From positions 271,170 through 335,169 of IMG/VR virus record IMGVR_UViG_3300025121_000011: a stretch of DNA of 64,000 bases; one strand, given 5' to 3'. The position numbers and the translations under genes are program-made. Shown in pieces: positions 24,105-61,295 of this stretch (position 1 is its first letter; each line of letters opens with the position of its first letter). The notes below the pieces were generated by a model. The model worked only from the letters and a program-made list of their open reading frames with translations, made no database searches and was not told the origin of the DNA.

Positions 24105-24438
24105 GAAAAAGAGTGGATTGATTTTTATTATGGTTTATCAGTCCTCCTTCATATTTAGTTATATAATTGCTTATACGGTTGTTTTAGATGTTTTGTCTAT
24201 ATTTAAATAGCAATATACAAAAGATATACGTCTAAGAAAAGTTTGAATTAAGTAAAAATATTTAGATAGCGATAAAATTCAGTATCTGTTGAGTTTGTTA
24301 GAGAAATTTATACACAAATTGATGAAGTTAATATCATTGGGTATTATTCTTCTTATGATGTTATTCATGTTGATGTTAACCGATGAACAGAAGAAATCGG
24401 TGATATATAATATGGATGCAATTGGAGGTTGGAAATGA
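24105..24438 (+). pseudogene. decayed copy of the Imm5-like tandem gene
   Basis: retains ATTGCTTATACGGTT...CTAAGAAAAG and GTTAACCGATGAACAGAAGAAA...ATGGAT, but is broken by stops and frameshifts. Confidence 0.65.
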
Positions 24439-44597: not shown

Positions 44598-44662
44598 GGA
44601 ACAAATAGTTTAATTGGGAGAACATTGACGAAAGGTGTGGGTTCGAGTCCTGCTTTGATTTT
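44598..44662 (+). ncRNA. tRNA-like RNA lacking an anticodon arm (degenerate copy)
   Basis: D-loop-like segment and T arm GTGGG-TTCGAGT-CCTGC; paralogue of 44939. Confidence 0.4.
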
Positions 44663-44938: not shown

Positions 44939-45009
44939 GGGCCAAATAGTTCAAGTGGGAGAATATCGTCGCGAGAAGATGTAGGTTCAAATCCTACTTT
45001 GAGCCCCCA
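44939..45009 (+). ncRNA. tRNA-like RNA with a truncated anticodon arm
   Basis: GGGCCAAA/TTTGAGCCC acceptor; T arm GTAGG-TTCAAAT-CCTAC; CCA end. Confidence 0.55.
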
Positions 45010-45026
45010 ATTTCATATTCATAGTT

Positions 45027-45079
45027 TGGGTACATTCAGCATAAATTTTTTTTACCATATAAAAACAAATCGTACCCAG
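45027..45079 (+). ncRNA. stem-CAGCA motif RNA, copy a
   Basis: TGGGTAC att CAGCA...GTACCCA G. Confidence 0.55.
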
Positions 45080-45118
45080 TGATTTAATCCTGGCTTTTGC
45101 CATTTAATGAGGTGTTTA

Positions 45119-45334
45119 ATGTGGAAGAATATTTTGGTTATGCTAATGCTTATGGGTTGCCCTACTGTTGAATCAGTTTCTGATGATGCAGCAGTAGTGG
45201 ATGATGCAGTAGTAGTTGAGACTCCGGTAGTTCAGTCTGATGCAGCAGTTGATGCGACTGTTACTACTCCGGTAGTTGATGAAAATGATGTTACTGCTGA
45301 TGTTGTAGAAAATGTTCCAGTTGCAACTGAGTAA
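45119..45334 (+). CDS. small acidic Val/Asp-rich lipoprotein
   Basis: signal peptide with LMGC lipobox. Confidence 0.6.
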   Translation: MWKNILVMLMLMGCPTVESVSDDAAVVDDAVVVETPVVQSDAAVDATVTTPVVDENDVTADVVENVPVATE

Positions 45335-45499
45335 ATAGGGAATAGGCATCACGGTCGCCTTTAAGTACGCCGTCATAGGTAAGTTTAGTTTTGGGTTGAT
45401 AACTATATTTAAGCAAACCTTAAACAGTTCATAATTTTAAGAAGAGATTTCTTATTATTCACAAATGAATGAGCCAATGATTGTGTCAGTTGGCATCGG

Positions 45500-45583
45500 T
45501 GCGGAGTATACAAGTGGTCAAAGTAGAGGCGCTCATAACGCTTTGCTATAGCTTCATGGGTTCGAATCCCATTTCCGCTCCCA
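45500..45583 (+). tRNA. tRNA(CAT) with a long variable arm and 1:72 mismatch (Met/fMet/Ile2 unresolved)
   Basis: AGGCG-ctCATaa-CGCTT; T arm ATGGG-TTCGAAT-CCCAT; CCA end. Confidence 0.75.
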
Positions 45584-45845
45584 ATGCTTGCACGAATATA
45601 GGTTCCGGTCGAAACACCTACAAAGTTTCGTAAAATCCTGTGAGTTTAGCCATCTGTAACCAACCAGGTCGGGTCAGGATTAAGCAACCGCAAGCGGGTC
45701 ATGCTAATATATTCTCATAACCTTTAGAAGTAGGATCGGAAAGAAATCCGGTAGGCAAGGTCGACTTACCCTGGTAAACTTCTTAAAGTGCTGCACTGGA
45801 ATAAAAAGCATACAGTTGGGTGATTGTCCTAGTCCCAACATCTTT

Positions 45846-46081
45846 AAGCCTTAACAGTTGGAGTTCTGTTTTTCATGAGTAAGCAGTGTCGGAGATTTAA
45901 TTTATTAAATCAATGACTAGGCTGAAAGTCGCTTTGCTGAATTTGATGATGCTTGTGTCAAAAGTATCTGATCTGAAAGCTTCAGACTTGATTGAATGCG
46001 AAAGTCATGGTTCTTAATTGACACTCCCCATGACAGTTAGTAAATCCAAGAGACGGTTAGGTTCGAATCCTAGGAGGCTTA
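45846..46081 (+). ncRNA. large tRNA-like RNA (acceptor stem and T arm enclosing ~200 nt)
   Basis: AAGCCTT/GAGGCTT acceptor; TTAGG-TTCGAAT-CCTAG T arm. Confidence 0.45.
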
Positions 46082-46086
46082 TTATT

Positions 46087-46434
46087 ATGAAAAAGCAAAA
46101 GGGTTGGATTATTATTGGTTTAAAACGAAACGGAGATTATGTTGGTTACATTGAAAATTCTTTTTCAATGGGACGCAGTTTAGAACGGGTTTTAGTTTTT
46201 CGTCCAAATCCTCTTTCTGAAAAAGAACATCCAAATAAGAGTGCTGTAGATAATGCTCGTTCACATTTAGCAAAACTTCAGGCTCTTGATGACCACACTG
46301 AGTGGTGGTTGTATCGAGTTGGTTCTTGTACTTGTCCCGTCAAAATTGATTGGGGTTCTTTATACGAAGAATATCGAGGAAGTACAAGAGTAAGTAATTT
46401 TAACTGGAGAAATCTTAAATTCAGTCGGAAATAG
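46087..46434 (+). CDS. hypothetical protein
   Basis: AGGAGG RBS overlapping the 3' end of the tRNA-like element. Confidence 0.6.
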   Translation: MKKQKGWIIIGLKRNGDYVGYIENSFSMGRSLERVLVFRPNPLSEKEHPNKSAVDNARSHLAKLQALDDHTEWWLYRVGSCTCPVKIDWGSLYEEYRGSTRVSNFNWRNLKFSRK

Positions 46435-46709
46435 AAGTATATTATTTGTTACCTGAGGGGATTTAAATGTCTGTGCCGAATGTAATTCAAAAGGCTTTTG
46501 ATCTTGATGAGAGGATTATTGCCGTGGCTTGGGATAAGATTGAGCCAGTGCTGATTTTATCTAAACCATGGCTCGAAAGTGCCGAAGAGGAGATGGTTCA
46601 AGAAGAGTTTTTAAGGCAAAGTGAAACATATCTATTATTTGATGAACTATGGCGATTTTTTGAAGATTGTGAATCAACTAGATATGATAGAGAATAGTTT
46701 TTGTTTTGA

Positions 46710-46866
46710 TGCCATGTAGCAAAGTAGGTAAATGCAAGTGTGGACTAAGCCAATATGGATGGTCTTGTAATCGAGAGAACAAGTTCCGGGATCATGGTGA
46801 AACCCATTGTTATTATTTAGCCCGACGAATAATGACGCGCTGGTTCGAGTCCAGCCATGGCAACTA
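46710..46866 (+). ncRNA. tRNA-like RNA with ~100 nt in place of the anticodon and variable arms
   Basis: TGCCATG/CATGGCA acceptor; D arm; GCTGG-TTCGAGT-CCAGC T arm; ends ACTA. Confidence 0.6.
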
Positions 46867-46871
46867 TTTTT

Positions 46872-46988
46872 TGCGGAATAGTGTAGTAGGGAGCACGCGT
46901 ATAATGTATCTTGATAAAGATGTATACAGCAATCAAACAAATCCATTGGGTGGACGAAGTATAGGTTCGAGTCCTATTTCTGCAACTA
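46872..46988 (+). ncRNA. tRNA-like RNA carrying a permuted stem-CAGCAA motif in the anticodon arm
   Basis: TGCGGAA/TTCTGCA acceptor; GTGT/GCAC D stem; ATAGG-TTCGAGT-CCTAT T arm; insert GTATCTTG-ataa-AGATGTATACAGCAA. Confidence 0.65.
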
Positions 46989-47027
46989 TTTGAGAAGACA
47001 TAACACTTAACAAAAGGAGATAATTAA

Positions 47028-47279
47028 ATGAAGAATTTTATGATTATTTTGGCAGCACTGTTTGCTTTTGGATGTGCAGAATCTAAGGTGATTAATGGTG
47101 TGGAGTATGAGCCATGTGGATTGCTGGATGACTCAGACTGTAAGGATCCTTCTATTCGTTATGAAGCTAACATTGGAAATGTCATCTGGGGAGTTATTTT
47201 GGTTGAGACTGTGGTTGTTCCGATTTGGCTTTTTGGGTTTGAGCTTTATGAGCCAACTTATGCAAAGCCGATCAAGTAA
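47028..47279 (+). CDS. small lipoprotein/membrane protein
   Basis: AAAAGGAG RBS; FAFGC lipobox; transmembrane segment. Confidence 0.7.
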   Translation: MKNFMIILAALFAFGCAESKVINGVEYEPCGLLDDSDCKDPSIRYEANIGNVIWGVILVETVVVPIWLFGFELYEPTYAKPIK

Positions 47280-47355
47280 GTAAAAATAATATAAAAATCT
47301 TTTGATTATTTTTAAAACGTAGCGTATGCTAAATGTAGCAATCAATTAAATTTAT

Positions 47356-47434
47356 GCCTCTGTAGCTCAGGATTGAGAGTGCCTGGCGTTTCGCTGGGAG
47401 GGTCGTTAGGTTAAAGTCTTAACCGGAGGCACCA
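47356..47434 (+). ncRNA. atypical tRNA-like RNA (cgTTTcg loop)
   Basis: GCCTCTG/CGGAGGC acceptor; ends ACCA; non-canonical anticodon and T loops. Confidence 0.55.
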
Positions 47435-47534
47435 TACAGGTTTGAGGGGAACGCGAAGAGATAGTCCTTAACGTAAGTATTCTATCGTGAGATAGAGTAG
47501 CCTACTACAATCATTTTATATAGATGTCATTTAT

Positions 47535-47627
47535 ATTTGAATAGCTTAGTGTCAAAGCGTTTGCGGCCTACTTCTTCGGATTCAAAAGCCGTAAAAGTCA
47601 TAGGTTAGATTCCTATTTCAAATACTA
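47535..47627 (+). ncRNA. tRNA-like RNA with an enlarged anticodon arm
   Basis: ATTTGAA/TTCAAAT acceptor; TTTGCGGC...GCCGTAAA stem with a 20-nt loop; ends ACTA. Confidence 0.55.
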
Positions 47628-47716
47628 TTTAAACTATAGGTTCACGGAACACACTCTTTCACGGTGGTTACTCACTTTAAATTGAAATATTTTTAGGTCT
47701 ATAGTTTAAATTTTTA

Positions 47717-47838
47717 AGGGATGCAATCAGCAATTAAATTTTTCTTTATGTAAAAACAAATCGCACCCTGATTTTTTTAGGATACAAACAGCAAATAAAC
47801 ATTCAACTTGTTTTTGAAAAACGTTTAATTGTATCCTG
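47717..47838 (+). ncRNA. two tandem stem-CAGCAA motif RNAs, copies b and c
   Basis: AGGGATGC aat CAGCAA...GCACCCTG; AGGATACAA a CAGCAA...TTGTATCCTG. Confidence 0.6.
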
Positions 47839-47870
47839 TTTATTATTAGTAGTAGCATTAAGGTGATAAT

Positions 47871-48161
47871 ATGATTCAAGCTATGACTGTATTGACAGCA
47901 GAACCGCATCCTAATGCGGATAGATTAAAAGTCTATACTCTACGTGCAAGTTATGATGAGCCAATTCTTCAGGTGTGTGCTAATCTAACCAATGTTTATA
48001 GTGTTGGTAATGTTGTAGCTGTTTGTTTAATTGGTCATGCATATGATGGTATGGTTATCAAATCCCGGAAGGTGCGTGGGGTTCTGTCTCAAGGAATGAT
48101 GATTGGTACTACAAAGGCTGTTTCAGGTTCTGATGTTACTGATTCATTTGTGATTGTGTAA
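47871..48161 (+). CDS. tRNA-binding OB-fold protein (Trbp111/PheT N-terminal-like)
   Basis: PHPNADRL...QVC...N...G..VAV...KVRGVLSQGM. Confidence 0.8.
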   Translation: MIQAMTVLTAEPHPNADRLKVYTLRASYDEPILQVCANLTNVYSVGNVVAVCLIGHAYDGMVIKSRKVRGVLSQGMMIGTTKAVSGSDVTDSFVIV

Positions 48162-48213
48162 AATATATAATTTAAAGTAATCTTCTTATGAATATTGTTA
48201 ATTTGTTTTTGTT

Positions 48214-48267
48214 TGGGTGCAACCAGCAAACTAAATAATTCAGGCTACTATTCTAAATTGCACCCAG
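48214..48267 (+). ncRNA. stem-CAGCAA motif RNA, copy d
   Basis: TGGGTGCAA c CAGCAA...TTGCACCCA G. Confidence 0.6.
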
Positions 48268-48343
48268 CTTTTAATTTTTACTTATAAATATATAATCAGA
48301 AGTAACTATCCTATGAAATTAAAAACATACCAGGAGGTATGCC

Positions 48344-48952
48344 ATGTTAAGGATGGTTGGGCCCAAAATTCCTATGGATATTTATGTGGCGGCTTCTGGT
48401 GGACCAGACAGCATGGCTGTCTTGGATTTTCTTATTCGTGGTGGTCGTAAAATTACAGTTTTACATTTTGATCATGGGACTAAACATGGAGAAGATGCTA
48501 GAGAGTTTATTAGGGAGTATTGTCAGTCGAGAGATATTAAACTGATTATTGGAAATGAGATTAGAGAGCGAGACTCTAACGAGTCTATGGAAGAATATTG
48601 GCGTGATATGCGATATCAGTTTCTTGATCAGTATTCAGATAAGCCAATTGTCATGGCACATAATCTTGATGATCAGGTGATGAGTTGGGTATTTACTTCT
48701 TTGAATGGATTGCCAAAACTTATTCCTTATAACAGAAGGAACGTTATCCGTCCTTTCATTGTAACTTCTAAGCAGAATATGATTGATTGGTGTGAGCGAA
48801 ATGGGGTTCCGTATTTAACGGACCCAAGTAATGATGATACAAGATATATGAGAAATTTTATTAGAAAAGAAATTCTTCCTTCAGCTTTAGTTGTTAATCC
48901 AGGATTATATAAAGTAATCTTAAAGAAGATTTTAAGAAATTTTGAAGGATAA
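48344..48952 (+). CDS. tilS: tRNA(Ile)-lysidine synthetase (PP-loop domain only)
   Basis: SGGPDS, DHG, RY.F, AHNLDDQ, IRP, DPSN...RNFIR. Confidence 0.88.
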   Translation: MLRMVGPKIPMDIYVAASGGPDSMAVLDFLIRGGRKITVLHFDHGTKHGEDAREFIREYCQSRDIKLIIGNEIRERDSNESMEEYWRDMRYQFLDQYSDKPIVMAHNLDDQVMSWVFTSLNGLPKLIPYNRRNVIRPFIVTSKQNMIDWCERNGVPYLTDPSNDDTRYMRNFIRKEILPSALVVNPGLYKVILKKILRNFEG

Positions 48953-48964
48953 ATAATTATATTT

Positions 48965-49000
48965 TGGATATATGCAGCAATTAAATCACAAACTATCCAG
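48965..49000 (+). ncRNA. stem-CAGCAA motif, copy e, abutting the RBS of the DUF2828 gene
   Basis: TGGATA tatg CAGCAA...TATCCA G, then AGAGG and ATG 49013. Confidence 0.55.
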
Positions 49001-49012
49001 TAGAGGTGAAAT

Positions 49013-50464
49013 ATGAGTTTTGTAGACGCAATGACTTCTAATGATATGCTTACAGAAAATGGTGCCGTTACTCACAGCACCTCAGGAAAAGCAATTATGG
49101 ATATGTTTTTCCAGATCGGTGGTATGCGTGGCCATAGTGGTGAAGATGTAATTTCTTTATTTACTAAGGCTCTTGGAGAAGATCCTTTAACGGCAATGAA
49201 GATCTTGTTTTATAACCGCGATATTCGTGGTGGACAAGGAGAGCGGCAAACTTTTCGTTATATTATGTCTTATCTTGCTCAGTATCATCCGGAGCTTATT
49301 CGAAAGAATATGCATTTGATTCCGGAATACGGTCGGTGGGATGATATGTTTGTGTTTGTTGGAACCGGATTGGAGAATGATGCTTTTGCTTTAATTCGCA
49401 CTGCATTGCATGAGCAAAACGGTTTAGCCGCAAAGTGGTGTCCTCGTTTGAAGTCTTCTAAAAAGATTTTAGCAGCAAAACTGTGTGCATATCTTGGAAT
49501 GACTCCGAAGCAATATCGTCAAACGCTTGCGAGACTTACCAAGGTTGTTGAAACTCCAATGTGCGCTAATCAGTGGGAAGATATTAACTTTAGTCAGGTC
49601 CCTTCGGTAGCAATGAAAAATTATCGCAAGTCATTTGCGAGACATACTCCCAACGAGTGGGAACAGTATCTTGCTGCTTTAGAAAAGGGCGACCCGGCTG
49701 TTAAGATTAATGCAAGCGCTATTTTCCCACATGACATTATCAAACAGTGGGTTGCTGGTTCAGTCGGTTATTATAGGGTTACATCTCCAGATCGTCAAGA
49801 GATTCGCGCAGCCGAAGCACAGTGGAATGCTTTGCCTGATTATATGGGTGAGAATTCTGGAAAGGTATTGGTTATGGCCGATGTTTCGGGTTCTATGTAT
49901 TCTGGTTTAAATCCCAGTTTAGCTCCAATTCAGGCTTCCGTTTCTTTGGCGCTGTATTGTGCCGAACGATGTAAGGGGCCTTTTAAGAATTTTTACATGA
50001 GTTTTTCTGGAAATCCAGAATTTGTAAAGGTTCAAGGAAGTAATATTTACGAAAAAGTTATTAATATCAACAATAAAAATGTTGGATATAACACTGATAT
50101 TAATCGTGCTTTTGCGGTATTGTTGAGTCGCGCAAAGCAGCACTCTGTTTCACAGGCCGACATGCAAGAAACTTTATTGATTCTTTCAGATATGCAATTT
50201 GATTGCAGCGAAATTAGTGGAAAGACTAATTTTGAAACGATTCGAGATCAGTACCGTGCATCTGGTTATCAACTTCCTCAGATTGTTTTTTGGAATTTGA
50301 ATTCTAAGGGTGGTGTTCCGGTAAAAATAACTGATGATGGAGTAGCTTTAGTGTCCGGGTTTAGCCCAAGTATTCTTACTGCAATCCTGGGTGGAGAAGT
50401 ATCGCCCATGGCAGTTTTGAATAGGGCAATTCATAGTGGACGATATGATGCGGTAACTCTTTGA
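49013..50464 (+). CDS. DUF2828 family protein with C-terminal vWA domain (Ro60/TROVE-like architecture)
   Basis: TENG, RDIRGGQGER, YGRWDD, AAKWCPR; MIDAS DVSGSM; ILSDMQFD, IVFWNL, VSGFSP. Confidence 0.82.
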   Translation: MSFVDAMTSNDMLTENGAVTHSTSGKAIMDMFFQIGGMRGHSGEDVISLFTKALGEDPLTAMKILFYNRDIRGGQGERQTFRYIMSYLAQYHPELIRKNMHLIPEYGRWDDMFVFVGTGLENDAFALIRTALHEQNGLAAKWCPRLKSSKKILAAKLCAYLGMTPKQYRQTLARLTKVVETPMCANQWEDINFSQVPSVAMKNYRKSFARHTPNEWEQYLAALEKGDPAVKINASAIFPHDIIKQWVAGSVGYYRVTSPDRQEIRAAEAQWNALPDYMGENSGKVLVMADVSGSMYSGLNPSLAPIQASVSLALYCAERCKGPFKNFYMSFSGNPEFVKVQGSNIYEKVININNKNVGYNTDINRAFAVLLSRAKQHSVSQADMQETLLILSDMQFDCSEISGKTNFETIRDQYRASGYQLPQIVFWNLNSKGGVPVKITDDGVALVSGFSPSILTAILGGEVSPMAVLNRAIHSGRYDAVTL

Positions 50465-50495
50465 TAAGGGATTGATGTTTATTGAATAAGTTTTA

Positions 50496-50628
50496 AGGAT
50501 ACATTAACAGCAAAACAAAAGACTACATGATGCAATTAATTAGGTCTTCGGATCGGAATTAATATGAGTGGCGGCGGGAAGGCATGACGCCACTCATTAA
50601 AAAAATAAATAGATGTCTATGTATCCTG
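50496..50628 (+). ncRNA. stem-CAGCAA motif RNA, copy f, with an internal hairpin
   Basis: AGGATACAT taa CAGCAA...ATGTATCCT G, enclosing ATGAGTGGCG/CGCCACTCAT. Confidence 0.6.
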
Positions 50629-50656
50629 ATTTTAATATTTTTATATAGAGGAATTA

Positions 50657-51292
50657 ATGCGAATTTGCACCTCAAATCCCGGCAAGGTATCTGAGTTTGG
50701 AGGGCTTCTCGCACCTCTAGATATTAACCTAGATGTGTCTGGAGATTACGATATTCCAGAAACCGGTATAACTTTTGCAGATAACTCGCGAGAAAAAATT
50801 CTGGGTTATGCCAAGCATTATTCTGGAGAATGGTTATTGGCAGATGATTCTGGATTAGTAATTCCAGCTTTAAATAATTTGCCAGGCCCATTTAGCGCGC
50901 GATTTAGTGATCTTGATCTTGATACGTTAATGATTGTATCAAGTGGAGATGATCGAGAAGTAATTGATTTAAAAAATAACAATCGTGTATTAGAGTTACT
51001 TAGTAATATTCCTCACGATAATCGTGGAGCTTACTTTGTGGCTTGTATTACTGTTTTAAATCCAGATGGAAAAGTTTCTTTCCAAGTAGAACGCAGAGCG
51101 TATGGTTATATTTCCAAAGAACTTCGTGGGAAAAATGGATTTGGATATGATCCTCTTTTCATTTCAGATAATAGCTTTGGCAAAACATGGGCAGAAATTG
51201 ATAAGGCTAGAAAGTCTTTAATCAGTCATCGATCTAAAGCTATTTGGGATTTCTTGGCTTGGATCTGCTCTACATCTGAGGTTATTTCATGA
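50657..51292 (+). CDS. rdgB: RdgB/HAM1 non-canonical purine NTP pyrophosphatase
   Basis: TSNPGK, DDSGL, PG..SAR, FGYDP, SHR motifs. Confidence 0.9.
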   Translation: MRICTSNPGKVSEFGGLLAPLDINLDVSGDYDIPETGITFADNSREKILGYAKHYSGEWLLADDSGLVIPALNNLPGPFSARFSDLDLDTLMIVSSGDDREVIDLKNNNRVLELLSNIPHDNRGAYFVACITVLNPDGKVSFQVERRAYGYISKELRGKNGFGYDPLFISDNSFGKTWAEIDKARKSLISHRSKAIWDFLAWICSTSEVIS

Positions 51293-51332
51293 GTATTCAG
51301 TTTACAATTAATGTCGTAGTAACTCGGTTTTA

Positions 51333-51917
51333 ATGATGGAATCAATACTTTTGCATTTTGATTCGGTTATAAATTCAATTAAGATTGGAATGCCAACAGG
51401 TAGGCTCCGTGTGCCAGATATAATTTCTGTGCTTGGCGTCGAACCACCTAAGAGAATTGGGCGTGAATTGTTTCTTGCAAGTGGGCGATTTGTTTATTTT
51501 TATTCTAGAACAAAAGTTTATCCACAAATGGTTGCCATGAATGATCTTGATGTGGCCTTTGTTGGGTCGGACGCCTTAGAGGCTGGTCCTTATGCTCAAC
51601 AGTGTAATGTTGTTTGGTCAGAGCTACAGCAAGGCGTAAGAGTAGTCCTGGCTGGCTCTACACAAATCTCTAAGGGTAAGCTGCTCCGAGTAGTTACCCC
51701 ATTTCCAGAATGGGCTCAGAAGGTCATTGGCGAGCTAGGAATTCCTCATACGATTTACGCAGTAACGGGCGGATCAGAGGGTTTGGTTGCTCATGGTTTG
51801 GCTGATGCCGTATTTGATATTGTTGAGACTGGAGAAACATTAAGAGATAATGGATTGGAAATTTTAATGGATTTCGGACAACTTCATACATGCTGTATTG
51901 TTAAGAGTAAGCCATGA
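51333..51917 (+). CDS. hisG: ATP phosphoribosyltransferase (short form, divergent)
   Basis: PTGRL, D.AFVG.D, G..E and ADAVFDIVETGETLRDNGL motifs. Confidence 0.8.
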   Translation: MMESILLHFDSVINSIKIGMPTGRLRVPDIISVLGVEPPKRIGRELFLASGRFVYFYSRTKVYPQMVAMNDLDVAFVGSDALEAGPYAQQCNVVWSELQQGVRVVLAGSTQISKGKLLRVVTPFPEWAQKVIGELGIPHTIYAVTGGSEGLVAHGLADAVFDIVETGETLRDNGLEILMDFGQLHTCCIVKSKP

Positions 51918-52798
51918 TTGAACTAGATTCTATGACGATGGATACATTTCGCCAACAACCATTAGTAGTAGAAGGTGAAAGCAAAGAAATTAGAGAGCAT
52001 CCAGAAGATCCAGAAAAAGTATTAATTTGGTTAAAGCCCACAATCTATAGCTTCACAGAAAATCGTTGTGCTTGGGTCGAAGGATCAAATCTTTTGAGAG
52101 CAAGAGCTATGAAAATCATTGTTCCTTTATTGCAAAGTAAAGGAATAGATCATGCTTATCAAGATATTTCCGATGTAACTGGTTTGATTTCGGCCAGAAA
52201 AATCCATCCGTCAGAAGACCCAAATGTAGAGGTAATCGTAAAGAGATTTAATAGTGGCACATCTTATCATCGTTATTATGGAATGGCGGCTAAGCCAACG
52301 AGGGGATCTCATAAGTTATGGCCCGGGGAAGTTGTTGGAAAGTATGAGCCATATCGTGGACCAAAGATTAGGTTTGACTGGAGGAATCCATTCTGGATTC
52401 CAGAATTAGTAATGAAGCTTCGTAAGACTAATCCGTTACTTCCAGCGGAAGTTTATAAGTGGCCTGATGAATTGCGTCAAGGCATTATGATGCGTGATGA
52501 AGTCTTGGGAGAGGATTTTGCTTCCGAGCTAATTGATACAAAGCAAGCTAGGAAAACTGCTCTATGGACATATGCAGTTTTACAAAATTATATGGGTGAA
52601 AGAAATATCGTTATATATGATATGTGTTTGTTTATTACATCAGATGGTAAAACTGTATATGGTGAAATCAATCAAGACTCTGGACGATTTAGACATTTAG
52701 ATTATGGAATGTTGGATAAGGATGTCTGGAGAGCAGGAGGCTCCATTGGAGATGTTTTAGAAAAATGGCAGATGCTAACTGTTATGTTACAAGAATAA
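51914..52798 (+). CDS. purC: SAICAR synthetase (PurC)-like protein, divergent
   Basis: EGESKEI, VEVIVK...GT, GEINQDSGR, LDKDVWR. Confidence 0.65.
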   Translation: MIELDSMTMDTFRQQPLVVEGESKEIREHPEDPEKVLIWLKPTIYSFTENRCAWVEGSNLLRARAMKIIVPLLQSKGIDHAYQDISDVTGLISARKIHPSEDPNVEVIVKRFNSGTSYHRYYGMAAKPTRGSHKLWPGEVVGKYEPYRGPKIRFDWRNPFWIPELVMKLRKTNPLLPAEVYKWPDELRQGIMMRDEVLGEDFASELIDTKQARKTALWTYAVLQNYMGERNIVIYDMCLFITSDGKTVYGEINQDSGRFRHLDYGMLDKDVWRAGGSIGDVLEKWQMLTVMLQE

Positions 52799-52818
52799 TG
52801 ACAGAAGGTTTGTGAAAT

Positions 52819-54066
52819 ATGATTATACCAAGTATTGATATTCAGGGCGGCAAAGTAGTTCAGCTTATTGAGGGCAGGGAGTTAGCATTAACTGTAGATG
52901 TTCCATACGCTTTAGCTGAAAAGTTTTCTCGCGTTGGAGAGTTTGCTGTTATAGATTTAGACGCTGCTATGGGTTTGGGTAATAATCGAGAGATTGTAGA
53001 ATCTTTAGTAAGAAAATATCCAGTTAGAGTTGGTGGTGGTATTAGGAATATATCAGATGCATTATATTGGTTAAATGCCGGGGCGTCAAAGATTATTATT
53101 GGAACCGCCGCTGTTCCAAATTTTATTTCACAACTTCCTCGTGATCGAATTATTGTAGCTTTAGATTCTTATAATGACGATGTTGTTATAAATGGTTGGA
53201 CTACAAGAACTGGACGTAATGTTGCCCAAGCTATGCAAGATGTTTTACCATATACATCTGGATTCTTAATTACTTTTGTAGAGAAAGAAGGAAGGTTAGA
53301 TGGCACAAACTTAGACAGGACTAAGTTTTTAGTTGATGCCGCAAATGGTGCGCGCATCACTTTTGCAGGAGGAATTACAACTGCTAATGATATAGCATAT
53401 CTAGATTCTATTGGTGCCGATTCGCAGGTCGGAATGGCTCTTTACACTGGAAAGCTTTTATTATCGGAAGGGTTCGCTTCTGTTTTGAAAAGTGATCGAA
53501 GCGATGGACTTTGGCCAACAGTTGTTCAAGATGAATCTGGAGTATTAGGTTTAGTATATTCAAATCAAGAAAGTCTTCATACATCAATTGAATCTGGTGA
53601 AGGTGTATATTGGTCAAGAAGAACCGGTTTATGGAAGAAGGGAAACTTTTCTGGCAATACACAATCAATAGTAAATATTAAAGTAGATTGTGATCGAGAT
53701 GCTTTGCTTTTTACAGTAAAGCAGCATGGTGAGGGATTCTGTCATACCGGTTCTTATCAATGTTTTAATTCAATGGATGCACTATTTGAACTTGAACAAA
53801 CATTAGAGCGCAAGAAACATTCTAATGATTTAGAATCTTATACATATAACTTATTTGAGCAATCAAATATCTTAAGAAATAAGATCATGGAAGAGGCGGC
53901 TGAATTATGTGACGCCCATAGTAATAGTGAGGTTATTCATGAGGCGGCAGATCTGATATATTTTATGATGACTTATCTTTCTTTACATGATGTAACTTTA
54001 GCTGATATTAAGAAAGAAATTAAACGTCGGTCATTAGTGATTGCAAGAAGGAAAAGTAAAGAGTGA
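52819..54066 (+). CDS. hisA: HisA-HisI-HisE fusion (ProFAR isomerase, PR-AMP cyclohydrolase, PR-ATP pyrophosphatase)
   Basis: IIPSIDIQGGKVVQL, VGGGIR; YWSRR...DCDRDALL...CHTG...C; KIMEEAAE...EAADL. Confidence 0.85.
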   Translation: MIIPSIDIQGGKVVQLIEGRELALTVDVPYALAEKFSRVGEFAVIDLDAAMGLGNNREIVESLVRKYPVRVGGGIRNISDALYWLNAGASKIIIGTAAVPNFISQLPRDRIIVALDSYNDDVVINGWTTRTGRNVAQAMQDVLPYTSGFLITFVEKEGRLDGTNLDRTKFLVDAANGARITFAGGITTANDIAYLDSIGADSQVGMALYTGKLLLSEGFASVLKSDRSDGLWPTVVQDESGVLGLVYSNQESLHTSIESGEGVYWSRRTGLWKKGNFSGNTQSIVNIKVDCDRDALLFTVKQHGEGFCHTGSYQCFNSMDALFELEQTLERKKHSNDLESYTYNLFEQSNILRNKIMEEAAELCDAHSNSEVIHEAADLIYFMMTYLSLHDVTLADIKKEIKRRSLVIARRKSKE

Positions 54067-54683
54067 CCAAGCCTTCCGAGGTTAGCTAAATTCTTTTGTT
54101 TCAAATATTGGAGAAATCTTATGAATAGCAGCGTGTTATATGCTCCAAGTCTTATTAGATTAGTGCGAGTTTTAAACTCGCAAACCAGTTCTTATAACTA
54201 TATTGATATGACAAAAGATAAGTGGGCGGAGCAAGGATATGTTGAGTGGAGTACTAGGTTAAGACTATTACAGTATAATAAAAAGTCTAGATGGTGTGGG
54301 CCAAATATTAGAGTGGTTATACCTGTTCGTAAAATAGCTCTAGACCGAAAGATAGCATACGATGAGGGACTTGTTGCCGGTGGCAACATTGTAGTGGCTG
54401 AACGTACAAGAGTATCCAAGATTCAGCAAAATTATAATTATGAAAATAATAAATATAAGCCTATCATACAGGAACTTTATACAATTGAGTTGCCACCAAA
54501 ATCCTCTAGTGGTGAGCTTTATAATGCTATTATGACTCTTAGAGAGGCAACGGGAAGGCCAATGGAAAAGCCTTGGTGGAATAAACATAAAAATTATATG
54601 TTGAATGATCATCTAACTTATTTAATCAGCCAAATATCTTAAGAGATAAGATCATGGAAGAGGAGGCTGAATTATGTGACGCC
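53864..54683 (+). repeat. 53-bp direct repeat (53864-53916 and 54631-54683)
   Basis: 51/53 identical. Confidence 0.8.
54121..54642 (+). CDS. hypothetical protein
   Basis: GGAG RBS. Confidence 0.65.
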   Translation: MNSSVLYAPSLIRLVRVLNSQTSSYNYIDMTKDKWAEQGYVEWSTRLRLLQYNKKSRWCGPNIRVVIPVRKIALDRKIAYDEGLVAGGNIVVAERTRVSKIQQNYNYENNKYKPIIQELYTIELPPKSSSGELYNAIMTLREATGRPMEKPWWNKHKNYMLNDHLTYLISQIS

Positions 54684-54778
54684 GGAGCCACCAACTTAAA
54701 AATATTTTCAAGCAAGAAATATAGGAAAGCGTCATATTTGATGATTCCGTTATCAATCGTGTAAGAGGAGAAGCTAAA

Positions 54779-55051
54779 ATGTCTTTGCCAAATTTCGATC
54801 AAGAATGTTATATAATTATTACATTAAAGAGCAGAACGGTTCATCATGAAGAGAGAGATTATGGCGAGTCATGGGGTCCGATGCCAGCGCATAACAGCAT
54901 CGAAGAATATTTACATACAGAAATGTATACAAGTAAACCTAAGTGGTTGGATGACCTAAAGAAGATTGAAGCGTCCGGCAGCGAATACTATGCCGGGATA
55001 TGTTCGCCAGTTGAAGTAAGATTCAGTATAACTCCAACAAAGGATATTTAA
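54779..55051 (+). CDS. hypothetical protein
   Basis: GAGGAG RBS. Confidence 0.6.
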   Translation: MSLPNFDQECYIIITLKSRTVHHEERDYGESWGPMPAHNSIEEYLHTEMYTSKPKWLDDLKKIEASGSEYYAGICSPVEVRFSITPTKDI

Positions 55052-55052
55052 A

Positions 55053-56156
55053 ATGTCTTTTATTCCGTTGATGACTGCTCTGGAGACTTCTGAATGGAAA
55101 TATCGCATTAAGGCACCTTCACAACTTATATGTGAGGAACCATATAAGGCGGCTAAAATTGTGCGATCTATGTATCGCGCTAGATTGATTGAACTTGCTA
55201 AAGAAAGACCGCACGAATATCTTGCAAATCTAATTGTGTTGATTTCTTCAAGGGTTACAAGGGGTCAAGTAAAGCTTGAGTTGGCATACAGTGAATATGA
55301 CGTTAATGATGTAACGACATGGAATACTCCGGAGGGACGATGGTGGACGGATAAGTTTCTAGAAGCTGTGGCCAATATGCCTCTTAATTATGCTATGAGT
55401 GCTGCTATCAGATATCTACGAGGAAATGGTAAGCAGGCAAAGATAAAGAGTCCTGGCGTTGGTATTATGTCCGCTGATACTGGTTGGAAAAACAGTGAAG
55501 TATCTAGGCTAACTGACATTTTTTTTAGTGGAGATTTTGGGGCGCCTTGTTATGATCCGGAATATATCGGGAATTATAGTGAGTTTAATTACACATGCAC
55601 AGCAGAAGAATTAGATGCTATGTGGGAAAAGGGAGTTAATATGTTTGCCCTTATGAGGGCAGAGAAAGATTTGAATTTTATTGCAGAGCTTCGTTCAATG
55701 TTGAAGTCTTTGGGCATGACTGCTCCCGCTCCTTTGAAAACAAAAGCTTTACCGAAGCCACGCAAAGTAAAGCAGTACTCTGTTGGTGATAAACTTGTTA
55801 AAAGTTCGCTTAGGGATCTTCCGGATGGAACAATTATTGTAAATAATAATGGTCCAATTAAATATCGATGTGCGACTCAAGAAGCTTGGGATGTTGGGTG
55901 GGGAACGGCAAATAAGAAAAACATTTGTGTGAAATGTAAGGATGATCTAAACTTTTACCATGAAACTGCACCTGGTTTGGGAGTTAAGTATCAACAGCCG
56001 TATATTTGGCGTCCATGTTTTGACAAGCATGATAAAGTTATTTGTAGGGTAGAGGATCCTACGGCTGATTCTAAAAGTTATTTTAAGGTTCTAAATGTTA
56101 CCGCTAATTTTATTAGCAACGGGTTTGTTGTGGTAACCCTACCACAAAAGCATTAA
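55053..56156 (+). CDS. hypothetical protein
   Basis: 367-aa ORF; AAGGA RBS. Confidence 0.75.
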   Translation: MSFIPLMTALETSEWKYRIKAPSQLICEEPYKAAKIVRSMYRARLIELAKERPHEYLANLIVLISSRVTRGQVKLELAYSEYDVNDVTTWNTPEGRWWTDKFLEAVANMPLNYAMSAAIRYLRGNGKQAKIKSPGVGIMSADTGWKNSEVSRLTDIFFSGDFGAPCYDPEYIGNYSEFNYTCTAEELDAMWEKGVNMFALMRAEKDLNFIAELRSMLKSLGMTAPAPLKTKALPKPRKVKQYSVGDKLVKSSLRDLPDGTIIVNNNGPIKYRCATQEAWDVGWGTANKKNICVKCKDDLNFYHETAPGLGVKYQQPYIWRPCFDKHDKVICRVEDPTADSKSYFKVLNVTANFISNGFVVVTLPQKH

Positions 56157-56188
56157 AAACTCAATGATAGAGGGCGCTATTAGCGGAG

Positions 56189-56779
56189 ATGCTTAAAAAA
56201 TTGACGCCAGAAGAATTTATACGGTTTGTTAATCCTGATCCATCCTTATCTTTAAGGATATCTATGATGATGGCGGAAGGTGTAATTGATTTTTATTACA
56301 TTAGATATCCACACAATCAACTTCCCAAACAATTGATGAAACAATGTCAAGATATATTAAGTAGTAAGCATATTAATATGTATGGCCAATTATATGAAAT
56401 GGAATTAACAGAACATAATGCGGTGCAATTTGCAGAAGATCATCCATTTGATACAATAAGCGTTCAAGCAGCACAAGCAGCTAAGGTTATTACATCAGTT
56501 TGTTCTGTTTCCTGCTATGCTAGTGAGTATCTGGTTACGAAGCCGAATATTTATTTGTATAATGCATGTTCTTATTATGTCGCGTATACTGTGCAATTGG
56601 CTACAGATCTTATTGATACGGAATCAATGATTGCATATTTAATTCCTGAAATTATTGATTACGCTATTAAAAATGAAGTGAGGATGTTTTCTGGGATAGG
56701 AGATTTTTCTAAATTTTTTGACACTTTATCTCCAGAGTTAAAAGATAAAGTAGTTTACAATATTAATTTATTTGGATAA
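56189..56779 (+). CDS. diverged member of the Imm5-like family
   Basis: FVNP, LIPEIIDYAIKNEVRMFSGIGDFSKFF...VVYN; lacks the Ala-rich tract. Confidence 0.7.
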   Translation: MLKKLTPEEFIRFVNPDPSLSLRISMMMAEGVIDFYYIRYPHNQLPKQLMKQCQDILSSKHINMYGQLYEMELTEHNAVQFAEDHPFDTISVQAAQAAKVITSVCSVSCYASEYLVTKPNIYLYNACSYYVAYTVQLATDLIDTESMIAYLIPEIIDYAIKNEVRMFSGIGDFSKFFDTLSPELKDKVVYNINLFG

Positions 56780-56901
56780 ATAAAATGATTATTTTGAGTA
56801 TCGAAAGCAAAATAAAGTTCTATTAAAGCTGGAACAAATGGGTAAGATATAAAAAAATAATATAACGTAATATAAGCTTGGATTATGAAACAAAATAAAA
56901 T

Positions 56902-56988
56902 GGCCGAGTGGCGGAGTAGGTAGACGCGCCAGACTCAAAATCTGGTTCTCAAAAGGGAGTGAGGGTTCGATTCCCTCCTCGGCCACCA
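56902..56988 (+). tRNA. tRNA-Leu(CAA)
   Basis: CCAGA-ctCAAaa-TCTGG; long variable arm; ends ACCA. Confidence 0.95.
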
Positions 56989-57183
56989 TTTTCTTTTTCA
57001 ATAGGTTAGCTTTGATAAAGCAGCTTCTATAAGCCAAATAATTATTTTAATTACATATGGCAATCGATGTAGATGTGGTGATGAAGTTGTTGGTAAAGAG
57101 GTTATGTTATGATATCTCAATAAAACTTTTATTCGCCAACGATGAAGATATTATTAAATATGTAATAAAGTATCGGAGAAATA

Positions 57184-57576
57184 ATGATGAAGACTGATTC
57201 TATAAAAAGATACCAAGACTGTGGGATTCTAGAAAAGATTTATCGACGCCGATACTATTTGGGGATTCCATATCATACGCTAAGTATGTGGATTAAAAAT
57301 AAATTCGCTGAAGAAGATTCAGAAGAAGATTTAGGCATTTTTTGGTCTATTTCAATCGGCTTAGCTCAGTTTAAAATGCACTGGTATTATACATTTGAAG
57401 AGGCGGGAGAATATTTTCGAAATTCCTCGGCGGCAAAAATCTCACCCACACGACGCTTTTTTAGATACTTTGTTGATTTATTCCGTAAGGAAGTAGTAGA
57501 GGAAGAGGAAATGGTAGTAGAGGAAGACAAGATAGATGTTTCCGATACAGAACGACACGAAGAGTTCCTATCTTAA
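57184..57576 (+). CDS. hypothetical protein
   Basis: GGAG RBS. Confidence 0.6.
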   Translation: MMKTDSIKRYQDCGILEKIYRRRYYLGIPYHTLSMWIKNKFAEEDSEEDLGIFWSISIGLAQFKMHWYYTFEEAGEYFRNSSAAKISPTRRFFRYFVDLFRKEVVEEEEMVVEEDKIDVSDTERHEEFLS

Positions 57577-57651
57577 TAAAAAAAGATCCAAGGTAAGAAG
57601 ATTGTAGAAATAGTTATTGTCTGCATTTTATTAGCTGTCTTTGTTTTATAT

Positions 57652-57726
57652 GGGCTCATAGTGAAAGGGATATCACAAGAAACTTCTAATTTCTAGTTCC
57701 AAGTTCGAATCTTGGTGGGCCTACCA
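57652..57726 (+). tRNA. tRNA-Arg(TCT)
   Basis: AGAAA-ctTCTaa-TTTCT; ends ACCA. Confidence 0.9.
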
Positions 57727-57744
57727 TTTATTGGAGATAATTAA

Positions 57745-58161
57745 GTGAATAAACGAAGTTGGATCATTTCTAATTCTGGCGAATGGAAAGCTATGCGTCA
57801 AGAAATGATTAAAGAATTGGAATCATCTTTAGAAACAGGAGAGGTTTATATTTTTAGTATCAGTCCTTGGATTAATGATGGAAGAAGGTTTGAGACTAGA
57901 AAGAAGAAGGATAGAACAATTCTTTATCTTGATATTCCATGTCCAATGGGTGAGGTTGTTGAAATTAATGGTGAGAAGAATATTGGCAATTTATTTTCAG
58001 TATTAGAGGACTTTAAAAGATATTATGTGAAACATGAGAAGCGAATAAGTTATTTGGTATCTGTTACGGATATCAAATATACCTCATGGTCAGAGGCTAC
58101 AGTGATTGGTCGAACAAGAAATGTATTGGTTTCTGGAACTATCTTGGAATATAAGGAGTAA
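57745..58161 (+). CDS. hypothetical protein
   Basis: GGAG RBS; GTG start. Confidence 0.6.
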   Translation: MNKRSWIISNSGEWKAMRQEMIKELESSLETGEVYIFSISPWINDGRRFETRKKKDRTILYLDIPCPMGEVVEINGEKNIGNLFSVLEDFKRYYVKHEKRISYLVSVTDIKYTSWSEATVIGRTRNVLVSGTILEYKE

Positions 58162-58231
58162 ATGTATCAATGGATTATGTTTGGATGTAAAAGATAACCA
58201 TGATAAGGAGCGTAAAAGTTATTAATGAAAA

Positions 58232-58606
58232 ATGTTTATTCCAGAAATTGGTGATGAGATTCAGCTTACTGAAGATTGGAATTTTAATCTTTATTTAGAG
58301 TCTCGTAATGAATCTTTGATTTCTTATTTAGGATTAAGTGAAGAGAGTTTTCCAAAACAAATCGGGAAATATTGGGAACCAAATTTTAAAATGGTATATA
58401 TATCAGCGAGTCTTCCTGCTGGTTCTATTTTTAGAATAGATCGAATTTATATTAGAAAAGGTCGTAGTGAATTTAGCTCCATTTCTTTTATCATGCAAGG
58501 AGTGACAACACAGAAATCTTATTCGTCTGATAAGACAAAAGAAATTCGTGTACGATTTTGGGCGAAACTTTCTGATATTAATCAGATTAATTTTAAATTT
58601 CTATAA
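58232..58606 (+). CDS. phage hypothetical protein
   Basis: IPEIGD...DW.F.L..E.RN...IDRIYIRKG...RFWAKL. Confidence 0.65.
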   Translation: MFIPEIGDEIQLTEDWNFNLYLESRNESLISYLGLSEESFPKQIGKYWEPNFKMVYISASLPAGSIFRIDRIYIRKGRSEFSSISFIMQGVTTQKSYSSDKTKEIRVRFWAKLSDINQINFKFL

Positions 58607-58840
58607 ATAATAGGAGAAGTTGTGATTCCTTACAGGGTGACGTTTAAATTAGAAGATCATGAATCTGTTGATGTAGAATATATTGTAGAAGAATTAGAGC
58701 ATCTTCTTGAAGATTGGTGTGAGAAATTGAATACATTGAATATTAAAATTAGATTTAATCCTGAATCGTTAACTGTTATTGATATGCCACTTGTCAAGTA
58801 ATAGCACATATATACATATATGTGTGCGCAAATTGATTAT

Positions 58841-58917
58841 TCCCACTTAGTTCAGTTGGTTAGAACATCTGACTGTTAATCAGAGGGTCCACAGTTCAAG
58901 TCTGTGAGTGGGAGCCA
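58841..58917 (+). tRNA. tRNA-Asn(GTT)
   Basis: TCTGA-ctGTTaa-TCAGA; ends GCCA. Confidence 0.93.
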
Positions 58918-59049
58918 TAATAAATTTAAATGTTCTCAGAGTAAAAGCATGGCTTTTTAGCCAGGAAATTAACCTGAAAGATGGTTAGTCACAATCTAAC
59001 CTTTATTATCTTATAATTATAAGAATTTGTTAAAAAGTAAGTTGAATAT

Positions 59050-59112
59050 GGATGTTAACAGCAAGTTAAAAACTCTTTGATTCATTCTCAAAATAAGTAA
59101 ATATACATCCTG
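59050..59112 (+). ncRNA. stem-CAGCAA motif RNA, copy g, just 5' of tRNA-Glu
   Basis: GGATGT taa CAGCAA...ACATCC TG. Confidence 0.55.
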
Positions 59113-60692: not shown

Positions 60693-61295
60693 ATGCGACT
60701 TGTTGGAATTACCGGTGGGATTGCCACTGGAAAATCATCTGTTTCTAAAATGTTACAGGAGTATTATGGAGTACCTGTAATTTATACAGATCAAGCGGCA
60801 AGGATTGTTGTTGAGCCTGGTTCCGATACTCTTAAGAAATTGGTAGAAGCATTTGGGTTAGATATTCTAACTGTGTCTGGAGAAATGGACAGATCAAAGG
60901 TGAGGCAATTAACGATTCATGATTCAGATAAGATGAAGATTTTAACCCAAATAATGTGGCCTGCAATTTCTAGACGAGTTAATCATATGATGAACAACTT
61001 TGAGCGTGCTGGTTATCATACGGTTTGCATAGAAAACGCAATGTTAATTGAATTTGGAAATCAAAAACTCTATGATAAGATTGTAGTTGTAACATGTGAT
61101 CCAGAAATTCAATTGGCTCGGGTTATGGAAAGGGATAACCAAAGCAAAGAAGATGCTATAGCAATGATTAACCAACAAATGCCCTTGGAAGAGAAGGAGA
61201 AGCATGCGGATTTTTTAGTTGTTAACAATGGTTCTGTTACTACATTAAGAAAACAAGTAGATGCATTATATAGAAAAATTATTCAAGAAGAGTGA
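60693..61295 (+). CDS. coaE: dephospho-CoA kinase
   Basis: VGITGGIATGKS, RVMERD, QMPLEEK...ADF.V.N.G. Confidence 0.9.
   Translation: MRLVGITGGIATGKSSVSKMLQEYYGVPVIYTDQAARIVVEPGSDTLKKLVEAFGLDILTVSGEMDRSKVRQLTIHDSDKMKILTQIMWPAISRRVNHMMNNFERAGYHTVCIENAMLIEFGNQKLYDKIVVVTCDPEIQLARVMERDNQSKEDAIAMINQQMPLEEKEKHADFLVVNNGSVTTLRKQVDALYRKIIQEE

Follow-up and report, generated by a model that had tools for sequence, protein, structure and literature searches.

Handle-bearing RNA elements clustered at phage DUF2828 genes, probable Y-RNA-like partners of a predicted Ro60-like protein

The final 64 kb of the 335-kb viral contig IMGVR_UViG_3300025121_000011 (the whole 64,000-nucleotide stretch that was analysed, hereafter the window) contains a gene for a DUF2828 protein and, around it, a series of elements that share one RNA handle. 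Read 5' to 3', the handle opens with one strand of a 7-bp closing helix (P1); after a spacer of 3 nt come a single-stranded CAGCAA and an insert that varies, and the complementary arm (P1') with a G behind it completes the element. In the reading that we consider likely, these elements are Y-RNA-like small non-coding RNA modules or genes whose common handle docks on the DUF2828 protein, for which a Ro60-like fold is predicted. Since their anatomy is Y-RNA-like while the motif (CAGCAA) and the protein family are different, we read them as Y-RNA-like partners of a divergent Ro60-type protein.

Two covariance models were built for the handle: R1 from short copies of the window's clade, and R2 from other phage lineages only, with every AGGAU-type arm excluded. 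Copies 2 and 5 lay outside both training sets. The seven copies described in an earlier note on this DNA are all present where it had placed them, on the + strand and in intergenic DNA, six being found by both models and copy 6 by pattern and by its orthologues. The copy spans below begin at the first base of P1 and include the G that follows P1'; a closed copy, a candidate copy and the DUF2828 gene are listed with them.

18962-19020, + strand: candidate ninth copy; P1 UUAAGGC/GCCUUAA, spacer UGA, CAGCAA, G; R2 19.4 bits (E 0.045).
45027-45079, + strand: copy 1; P1 UGGGUAC/GUACCCA, spacer AUU, core CAGCAU (not CAGCAA), then G; R1 40.6 bits (E 9.5e-8), R2 27.7 bits (E 3.9e-4).
46872-46985, + strand: eighth copy, in closed form within a tRNA-like gene of 114 nt; Rfam tRNA 40.8 bits; from sequence and fold.
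47717-47770, + strand: copy 2; P1 AGGG(A)UGC/GCACCCU, 7 bp plus one bulged A, spacer AAU, CAGCAA, G; R1 41.2 bits (E 6.9e-8), R2 28.9 bits (E 2e-4).
47779-47838, + strand: copy 3, 5' of a tRNA_bind gene; P1 AGGAUAC/GUAUCCU, spacer AAA, CAGCAA, G; R1 56.5 bits (E 1e-11), R2 44 bits (E 3.7e-8).
48214-48267, + strand: copy 4, 5' of a TilS-like gene; P1 UGGGUGC/GCACCCA, spacer AAC, CAGCAA, G; R1 42.2 bits, R2 31.3 bits (E 5e-5).
48965-49000, + strand: copy 5, the shortest; P1 UGGAUA(U)/(C)UAUCCA, 6 bp plus a U.C mismatch, CAGCAA at 48975-48980; R1 26.7 bits (E 2.8e-4), R2 21.1 bits (E 0.016).
49013-50464, + strand: gene for the DUF2828/DUF7788 protein, 483 aa, the proposed protein partner; Pfam, and PHROG 850 'RNA-binding protein'.
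50496-50628, + strand: copy 6, just 3' of the DUF2828 gene; P1 AGGAUAC/GUAUCCU, spacer AUUAA, CAGCAA, G; pattern scan, fold z-score -5.3.
59049-59112, + strand: copy 7; P1 GGAUGU/ACAUCC, 6 bp, spacer UAA, CAGCAA, G; R1 48.3 bits (E 1e-9), R2 31.7 bits (E 4e-5).

In an unfiltered scan of the whole window, R1 recovered six copies, which score between 56.5 and 26.7 bits (E 1e-11 to 2.8e-4); neither the minus strand nor the rest of the 64 kb gave a comparable match. The six best window matches of R2 are the same six short copies, again on the + strand only. Copy 6 was missed by the covariance models because its insert is long. The candidate at 18962-19020 lies 30 kb away from the DUF2828 gene, within 780 nt of intergenic DNA; it was not found by R1, and it is uncertain whether it is a further handle copy.

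The base pairing of P1 is maintained while its sequence varies by lineage. In an alignment of 64 short copies from the window phage and its relatives, the 7 bp of P1 follow the pattern W-GG-R-U-N-N, with UUU conserved upstream and GUU downstream of the element in this clade. At each of the two inner P1 positions, all four types of Watson-Crick pair are represented (AU30/GC23/CG8/UA3 and CG37/GC16/UA7/AU4), and compensatory changes occur at two further positions, one of them a pair that the element search did not demand. In the R2 training alignment, compensatory changes were seen in 7 of 7 P1 pairs; CAGCAA alone is invariant there, and the G after the 3' arm is present in at least 90% of rows. 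The arms thus differ between copies yet are complementary within each, which indicates selection for pairing rather than copying. The motif given in the earlier note was borne out in its covarying stems and has to be amended in its details: the stem is 7 bp long, and across lineages no letters but CAGCAA and the G behind the 3' arm stay the same.

Because the element finder itself requires pairing, we ran an anchor test that has no such requirement. The anchor was GG-N4-N2-5-CAGCAA, and success was scored when the complement of the anchor's own four variable bases, followed by CC-W-G, lay within 600 nt. The anchor's own complement was found downstream in 308 of 554 non-redundant anchors; when arms were swapped among anchors, the mean was 39.6 (standard deviation 5.3). 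A loose hand pattern (7-bp stem, CAGCA, G) gave about 3.4 matches per shuffled window and is too unspecific to call copies alone, so the covariance models were used instead. Minimum-free-energy folding of single copies gave mostly weak z-scores because the inserts are AU-rich, and comparative evidence is therefore needed.

Neither in the window nor at 20 related loci does any Rfam family cover the handle, so that the earlier note was right to leave the motif unassigned to a known family. Our literature search, whose coverage stopped short of subscription journals, found no published description of a CAGCAA handle, and the papers that it returned naming DUF2828 were unrelated. ARAGORN and the Rfam tRNA model called none of copies 1-7; the short copies have no D or T arm and hence no cloverleaf of a functional tRNA.

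The handle copies are gathered about the DUF2828 gene. Of copies 1-6 and the closed copy, all on the gene's strand, the farthest upstream is copy 1 (-4.0 kb) and the farthest downstream is copy 6 (about 160 nt beyond the stop codon); copy 7 starts 8.6 kb 3' of that stop codon. As had been pointed out before, two copies bracket the gene: the final G of copy 5, at 49000, stands 2 nt 5' of the gene's Shine-Dalgarno sequence GAGGUG, and copy 6 follows just downstream. Copy 5 thereby occupies the zone in which the handle is enriched family-wide. Across 159 DUF2828 loci, 260 of 356 same-strand matches to the strict handle fell within the 500 nt upstream of the gene (3.57 per kb), compared with about 0.02 per kb inside the gene and downstream and with zero opposite-strand matches in the 500-nt upstream bin, an enrichment of about 150-fold. 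Of the checks proposed in the earlier note, the covariance model and the count of handles at DUF2828 loci turned out in its favour.

The association extends to distant lineages. In 80 viral contigs whose DUF2828 homologues are only about 44% identical to the window's protein, 134 handle matches were on the gene's strand and 13 on the opposite strand, and two conserved handle RNAs usually stand directly 5' of the gene. When viral contigs were scanned blind with the 5' half of the motif, 116 new loci were obtained; DUF2828 was present in the fetched stretch in 40 of the 89 with a closing arm and in 1 of the 27 without one. Among 80 DUF2828 loci from bacterial and archaeal assemblies, which include isolates such as Ruminococcus flavefaciens FD-1, a strict lineage-neutral pattern gave 128 same-strand matches in 60 loci and 13 matches on the opposite strand. 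In cultured phages the handle adjoins the gene in 6 of the 7 lineages examined, each with its lineage-specific P1, and these carriers infect Proteobacteria, Firmicutes, Actinobacteria and Campylobacterota. The copies are as follows.

Salmonella phage Mushroom (a Felix O1 relative): four copies (P1 AGACCNN), which follow the gene within the tRNA array.
Mycobacterium phage Jubie: three copies, P1 UGGACNN, downstream of the gene and ending at a terminator-like GC-rich hairpin and T run.
Bacillus phage PJN02: five copies beside the gene.
Campylobacter phage F367: two copies beside the gene.
Listeria phage AG20: three copies beside the gene.
Sinorhizobium phage phiM7: two or three copies beside the gene.

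The Felix O1-type RNA cluster is kept in Felix O1 and more than 230 relatives, where it is unannotated or labelled 'hypothetical'. The tRNA array of phage T5 has no handle, and no DUF2828 gene was found in the 50 kb of T5 examined; the absence from this array indicates that the motif is not general to phage tRNA clusters.

Several further features of these loci were recorded. In the freshwater and marine clade L003-L080, two tandem conserved RNAs, each enclosed by a handle, occupy about -480 to -85 from the DUF2828 start; their inserts of about 140 nt and 205 nt match no Rfam family. Copies 2 and 3 of the window are likewise arranged in tandem. Adjacent handle RNAs often have the same P1 (L015 near 763, L069 near 509, L031 near 869), which allows neighbours to pair with each other, the 3' arm of the first with the 5' arm of the second, in an alternative precursor hairpin. 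In Listeria phage AG20 (L206 10069-16179), genes for an RtcB-type 'tRNA splicing ligase', an RNA ligase, a phosphohydrolase and a phosphoesterase lie 3' of the DUF2828 gene and its three handle RNAs, an RNA-repair neighbourhood that resembles bacterial rsr-rtcBA operons.

Pfam matches of the DUF2828 protein were limited to DUF2828 (PF11443) and DUF7788 (PF25043); the TROVE profile gave no match even at E<=10, and phmmer against PDB sequences retrieved no Ro60. An AlphaFold model computed from 60 homologues (pLDDT 91.7, pTM 0.91) was then compared with the PDB by Foldseek. The best 12 matches were all Ro60/TROVE+vWA structures (E 4e-10 to 4e-6, TM 0.47-0.63, about 500-575 aligned columns, 12-17% identity), the chains including 9kop, 2i91, 9nep, 2nvo, 1yvr and 9l5y and the structures being Ro60 of Thermus phage phiLo, Xenopus, human and Deinococcus. 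The vWA residues of the MIDAS motif (DxSxS...T...D), D290, S292, S294, T361 and D393, are invariant in the 60 homologues, as are the arginines R69, R72, R78, R108, R145 and R169 of Arg-rich N-terminal motifs. The predicted fold is accordingly that of Ro60, a TROVE-type helical-repeat ring joined to a vWA domain with an intact MIDAS, as the earlier note had supposed; the resemblance lies in the fold, and at the sequence level the protein falls outside TROVE. Ro60 binds Y RNA on the outside of its ring and single-stranded RNA ends in its central hole; for the DUF2828 protein, the invariant N-terminal arginine motifs are the sole pointer to a putative RNA-binding surface. DUF2828 is widespread, with more than 7,900 protein clusters matched in a search limited to 8,000 candidates, and is encoded in 702 cultured-phage records, among them those of Felix O1 relatives, A511/P100-type Listeria phages, Campylobacter phages and mycobacteriophages.

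Many inserts are built from parts of tRNAs. A 5-bp hairpin with a 7-nt loop of the form YU-NNN-R-N was present in 46 of 116 short copies and in 8 of 2320 shuffles, and the 'anticodons' so displayed include UUU, UGU, UCU, GCA, UGA, GCU, GUA, CAU and others. Within the window, copies 1, 3 and 7 carry hairpins of this size with an atypical loop position 33 or 37. These are UUUUU-ACCAUAU-AAAAA in copy 1, the anticodon-arm-like UUCAA-CUUGUUU-UUGAA in copy 3, and UUUGA-UUCAUUC-UCAAA, with CAU in the anticodon position, in copy 7. Copy 7 lies between tRNA-Asn and tRNA-Glu and ends 4 nt 5' of the latter; nearly the same design recurs at L081 757-827. L081 and L083 are two related 400-kb phages, and both also keep the handle and insert of copy 6 (L081 11693-11835, L083 12325-12469). 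That insert is 108 nt long and forms two hairpins, one of them GC-rich and strongly conserved (GGCGGCGGGAAGGCAUGACGCC).

A second kind of insert is larger. Relatives often have one copy per genome whose tRNA elements stand in permuted order (T arm, closed acceptor-like stem, D arm), and four cultured lineages have one copy each with such a T-arm/closed-acceptor/D-arm domain. The domain is joined to the stem via the anticodon-stem position at L017 5319-5441, L203 5509-5636, L202 10422-10546, L204 5764-5890 and L207 5280-5403. The Rfam YrlA model (RF02553) aligns to it below the threshold of 69 bits, scoring 40.1 bits for L017 and 39.3 bits for Jubie. Relatives' copies with tRNA-like inserts, several of them metagenomic, score 27-40 bits, and the window has no YrlA match at the gathering score (69 bits) or at E<=1. 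The handle itself is not recognised by the YrlA model, which aligns it in a different register.

The only such tRNA-like domain of the window is the gene at 46872-46985, whose acceptor stem, D arm and T arm are normal and follow the usual tRNA order, while the handle takes the place of the anticodon arm. Here the handle is a closed hairpin: the 7-bp P1 (46906-46912/46917-46923) is closed by the loop GAUA, the spacer AUA and CAGCAA (46927-46932) follow, the G keeps its position immediately behind the 3' arm, and the RNA ends are shifted to the acceptor stem. This tRNA-like body is the window counterpart of the YrlA-like copies, and 39 genes of the same closed-handle design were found in DUF2828 loci of other genomes. 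On a contig binned as Pacearchaeota (L225 3720-3837), an open handle surrounds a normal-order tRNA (Rfam tRNA 45.4 bits, 3756-3828).

Other tRNA-like sequences lie near the window copies. Those at 44599-44661 and 44940-45005 (63 and 66 nt, Rfam tRNA 37.3 and 32.1 bits, neither called by ARAGORN) have acceptor, D and T arms and almost no anticodon arm; they look like the counterpart of handle RNAs that consist of an anticodon arm only. Two atypical tRNA-like genes stand just 5' of copies 2 and 3 (47357-47435 and 47535-47624); one ends in CCA yet is uncalled by ARAGORN, and the other, of 90 nt, scores 49.1 bits with the Rfam tRNA model. The sequence at 46706-46870, called by neither ARAGORN nor Rfam, has tRNA-like ends (GCCAUG...CAUGGCA), a GGUUCGAGUCC T loop and about 80 extra internal bases, and may represent either a tRNA that carries a large insertion or a further tRNA-like RNA. 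After tRNA-Met (45500-45583) comes a noncoding stretch of about 500 nt (45584-46086) with no Rfam match at E<=1, which terminates in a T-arm-like GGUUAGGUUCGAAUCCUAGG overlapping the ribosome-binding site of the open reading frame (ORF) at 46087.

Several observations weigh against Y-RNA-like partners of the DUF2828 protein. The gene was missing from the fetched 1-15 kb in 49 of the 89 viral-contig loci with a closing arm, and 20 of the 80 bacterial and archaeal assembly loci had no strict match. Vibrio phage D479 encodes the gene and has no handle within 8 kb, the range to which that search was limited. A comparison of mismatch types in P1, made to look for pairing at the RNA level, gave 33 G.U and 20 A.C over a heavy, noisy background. 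No window copy has a promoter- or terminator-like signal of its own in the scan of 44-51.5 kb, where such signals did not rise above those of shuffles. None of the runs listed as containing the window is an RNA run, and three runs of the same study labelled metatranscriptomic held none. Finally, the strong upstream position of the handle would also be in keeping with a cis-acting leader of the gene.

This last point is one basis of the best-placed alternative. On that view the copies would be operators that act in cis within mRNA leaders; bound there by DUF2828 protein or by a different factor, they would control translation of the downstream genes, the DUF2828 gene included, and would make up a regulon rather than free RNAs. 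Most window copies precede an ORF, copy 5 almost touches the Shine-Dalgarno sequence, the family-wide peak falls in the 500 nt 5' of the gene on the same strand, and separate promoters and terminators were not found. However, the three copies of Jubie are downstream of the gene, those of Mushroom lie within a tRNA array after it, and copy 7 precedes a tRNA and no ORF. Moreover, two to five tandem copies with tRNA-like cargo would be superfluous for an operator, and the closed form is found inside tRNA-like genes. We therefore regard operators as an unlikely explanation of the family as a whole, although autoregulation through the nearest copy could exist alongside the binding of Y-RNA-like RNAs. 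The earlier note had left a choice between Y-RNA-analogue ligands and operators of the DUF2828 protein. The first half agrees with the Y-RNA-like location, strand and tRNA-like domains; the second is weaker, since elsewhere the copies are found in tRNA arrays or downstream of the gene, not before ORFs.

It is distinctly improbable that the handles are processing punctuation, that is, host RNase sites in long tRNA and mRNA transcripts with no link to DUF2828. Copies do abut tRNAs (copy 7 at its tRNA-Glu, and a copy at L081 5512 that begins 4 nt after tRNA-Lys), and the flanking UUU and GUU are conserved in the window's clade. Yet CAGCAA and the G are kept across phages whose hosts differ greatly in their RNases, DUF2828 and not the tRNAs is the neighbour that stays constant, and the T5 array lacks the motif; an invariant single-stranded hexamer points instead to a sequence-specific binder. 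That this binder is another tRNA-related protein, the tRNA_bind or the TilS-like protein, with DUF2828 as a bystander, we rate just as low. Both genes keep synteny with the copies in the window and in its two closest relatives, three window inserts have the build of anticodon arms, and copies 1 and 7 carry CAU, the anticodon of the TilS substrate; but no TilS or tRNA_bind gene is annotated beside the handle clusters of Mushroom, Jubie, PJN02, F367, AG20 or phiM7, and such a binder is unlikely because the DUF2828 gene is the only common neighbour.

There is hardly any case for DNA-level elements (recombination sites, hairpin promoters or miniature mobile elements with inverted ends): as intergenic inverted repeats of variable spacing the copies recall integron attC sites, and TAAA after CAGCAA in several of them recalls a late-promoter box, but they are co-oriented with genes and tRNAs and strictly strand-specific, their inserts hold T-loop, D-loop and anticodon-loop features, some align to YrlA, and the TAAA is unconserved in other lineages.

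Particular candidates of the latter kind were tried and rejected. A sigma-54-type promoter (GG...GC) was discarded by eye, as its spacing varies between 9 and 11 nt and the downstream complementary arm is left unexplained. The late-promoter-like TAAA(T) is found in five or six window copies, and in several it is the 5' strand of a second helix. Integron attC-like sites and miniature mobile elements were rejected because each copy has its own compensating arms. The attC consensus has R''/R' boxes, RYYYAAC ... GTTRRRY, at the ends of an imperfect palindrome; no GTTRRRY box occurs in the elements, whose ends read W-GG-R-U... and ...A-Y-CC-W-G in the window's clade and differ in other lineages.

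On the preferred reading, Y-RNA-like RNAs with a docking handle, we infer the following scheme. The handle would be bound by the Ro60-like DUF2828 protein much as Ro60 holds Y RNAs by their terminal stem with a conserved bulge in the 5' strand. The insert would be exchangeable cargo, which in the window consists of short hairpins, three of them built as anticodon arms, and one whole tRNA-like body, and in relatives of anticodon-arm mimics, YrlA-like tRNA elbow domains and larger conserved RNAs. The RNAs are probably excised as discrete species from long co-directional tRNA and mRNA transcripts, and the resulting ribonucleoprotein (RNP) may serve as a tether or decoy that offers pieces of tRNA to nucleases or to enzymes that bind tRNA. 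More tentatively, as a reading that we hold to be less likely than not, we suggest a modular display of tRNA parts: one protein and one universal handle would offer anticodon arms, elbows or whole tRNA bodies as decoys or tethers, either against host defences that target tRNAs (anticodon nucleases) or to steer tRNA repair and modification enzymes. Such a display would make sense of the action of a Felix O1-type homologue against a defence system.

Common as DUF2828 proteins are, they have had no described RNA partner, and a defined handle supplies concrete RNAs for binding tests. The handle also accounts for many 'pseudo-tRNA' genes, 'tRNAs with insertion' and unannotated gaps in phage tRNA clusters. 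By analogy, Ro60-type RNPs would use at least two different recognition motifs, with CAGCAA as a candidate for one of them. If the anticodon-arm and elbow inserts are decoys or tethers, they would represent a new phage route against tRNA-directed host defences.

The DNA runs that contain the window are labelled as groundwater or soil metagenomes. Almost all genes of the window are on the + strand, and its 44-59 kb region consists of tRNA genes, odd tRNA-like sequences and small ORFs, with a Ham1 gene among them. Two genes of this region recur at the same place in the jumbo phages L081 and L083.

47871-48161, + strand: gene for a tRNA_bind (PF01588) protein; Pfam, with synteny in L081 and L083.
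48344-48952, + strand: TilS-like PP-loop ATPase gene (PF01171); Pfam, directly 5' of the DUF2828 gene, likewise in L081 and L083.

We treat both genes as context of the proposed RNP. Downstream lies a metabolic block (50657-54066) with Ham1 (ITPase), a HisG-like gene and a SAICAR-synthetase-like gene; its 415-aa ORF at 52819-54066 matches the His_biosynth, PRA-CH and PRA-PH families, and a dephospho-CoA kinase gene follows beyond it at 60693-61295. ORFs at 24429-25995 are made of tandem 9-12-nt repeats (AGCAGCATT and similar, minus strand) and are the source of most false minus-strand matches to CAGCA.

The closest known system is that of bacterial and phage Ro60 (Rsr) with Y RNAs such as YrlA and YrlB. 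Y RNAs have their genes no more than 4 kb from that of Ro60 and on its strand; the RNA ends pair, and a conserved motif of the 5' strand, GNCGAAN0-1G, lies at a bulge of the stem (PMC4201824). Ro60 of Thermus phage phiLo binds the Yrl1 and Yrl2 RNAs, which have a CGAA bulge (PMC12135203). The phage loci described here share with these systems a ring-shaped TROVE+vWA protein (in our case a predicted fold), several small RNAs within a few kb on the same strand, and paired RNA ends that adjoin a conserved single-stranded motif on the 5' side. In both, a single RNA of each genome mimics a tRNA (T-arm/closed-acceptor/D-arm), and the rest form long hairpins with small loops. They differ in that the protein belongs to DUF2828/DUF7788 and matches no TROVE profile, and in that the motif is CAGCAA, 3 nt after a 7-bp helix and with a 3' G, rather than GNCGAAN0-1G or CGAA. 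Furthermore, the phage loci hold up to eight or nine copies, many of their inserts mimic anticodon arms, and their handle has two topologies, one with open and one with closed ends.

A second comparison is with the small RNAs of T5 (RNA1, RNA2, RNA3, RNAI, RNAIII, RNAIV), which, like the handle RNAs, are found among phage tRNA genes, are in part tRNA-like and are probably cut from the same transcripts. The T5 record (L288, 30284-41566) annotates eight 'stable RNAs with unknown functions' in the tRNA cluster, some of them tRNA-like; unlike the RNAs described here, none of the eight has a CAGCAA handle.

The nearest precedent for the protein is gp130 of the Felix O1-type coliphage Bas63, which has a Ro60-like structure, is encoded directly 5' of tRNA genes and counters the Ppl defence system (PMC11482910). 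The resemblance of a phage protein to Ro60 and the guess that Y RNAs accompany it are thus already contained in this 2024 preprint on PhageMaP, whose authors guess that some of the Bas63 'tRNAs' are Y RNAs and identify no RNA, motif or structure (PMC11482910). In Mushroom the DUF2828 gene has the same position and is followed by four handle RNAs, and gene order and taxonomy suggest that gp130 is a DUF2828 orthologue.

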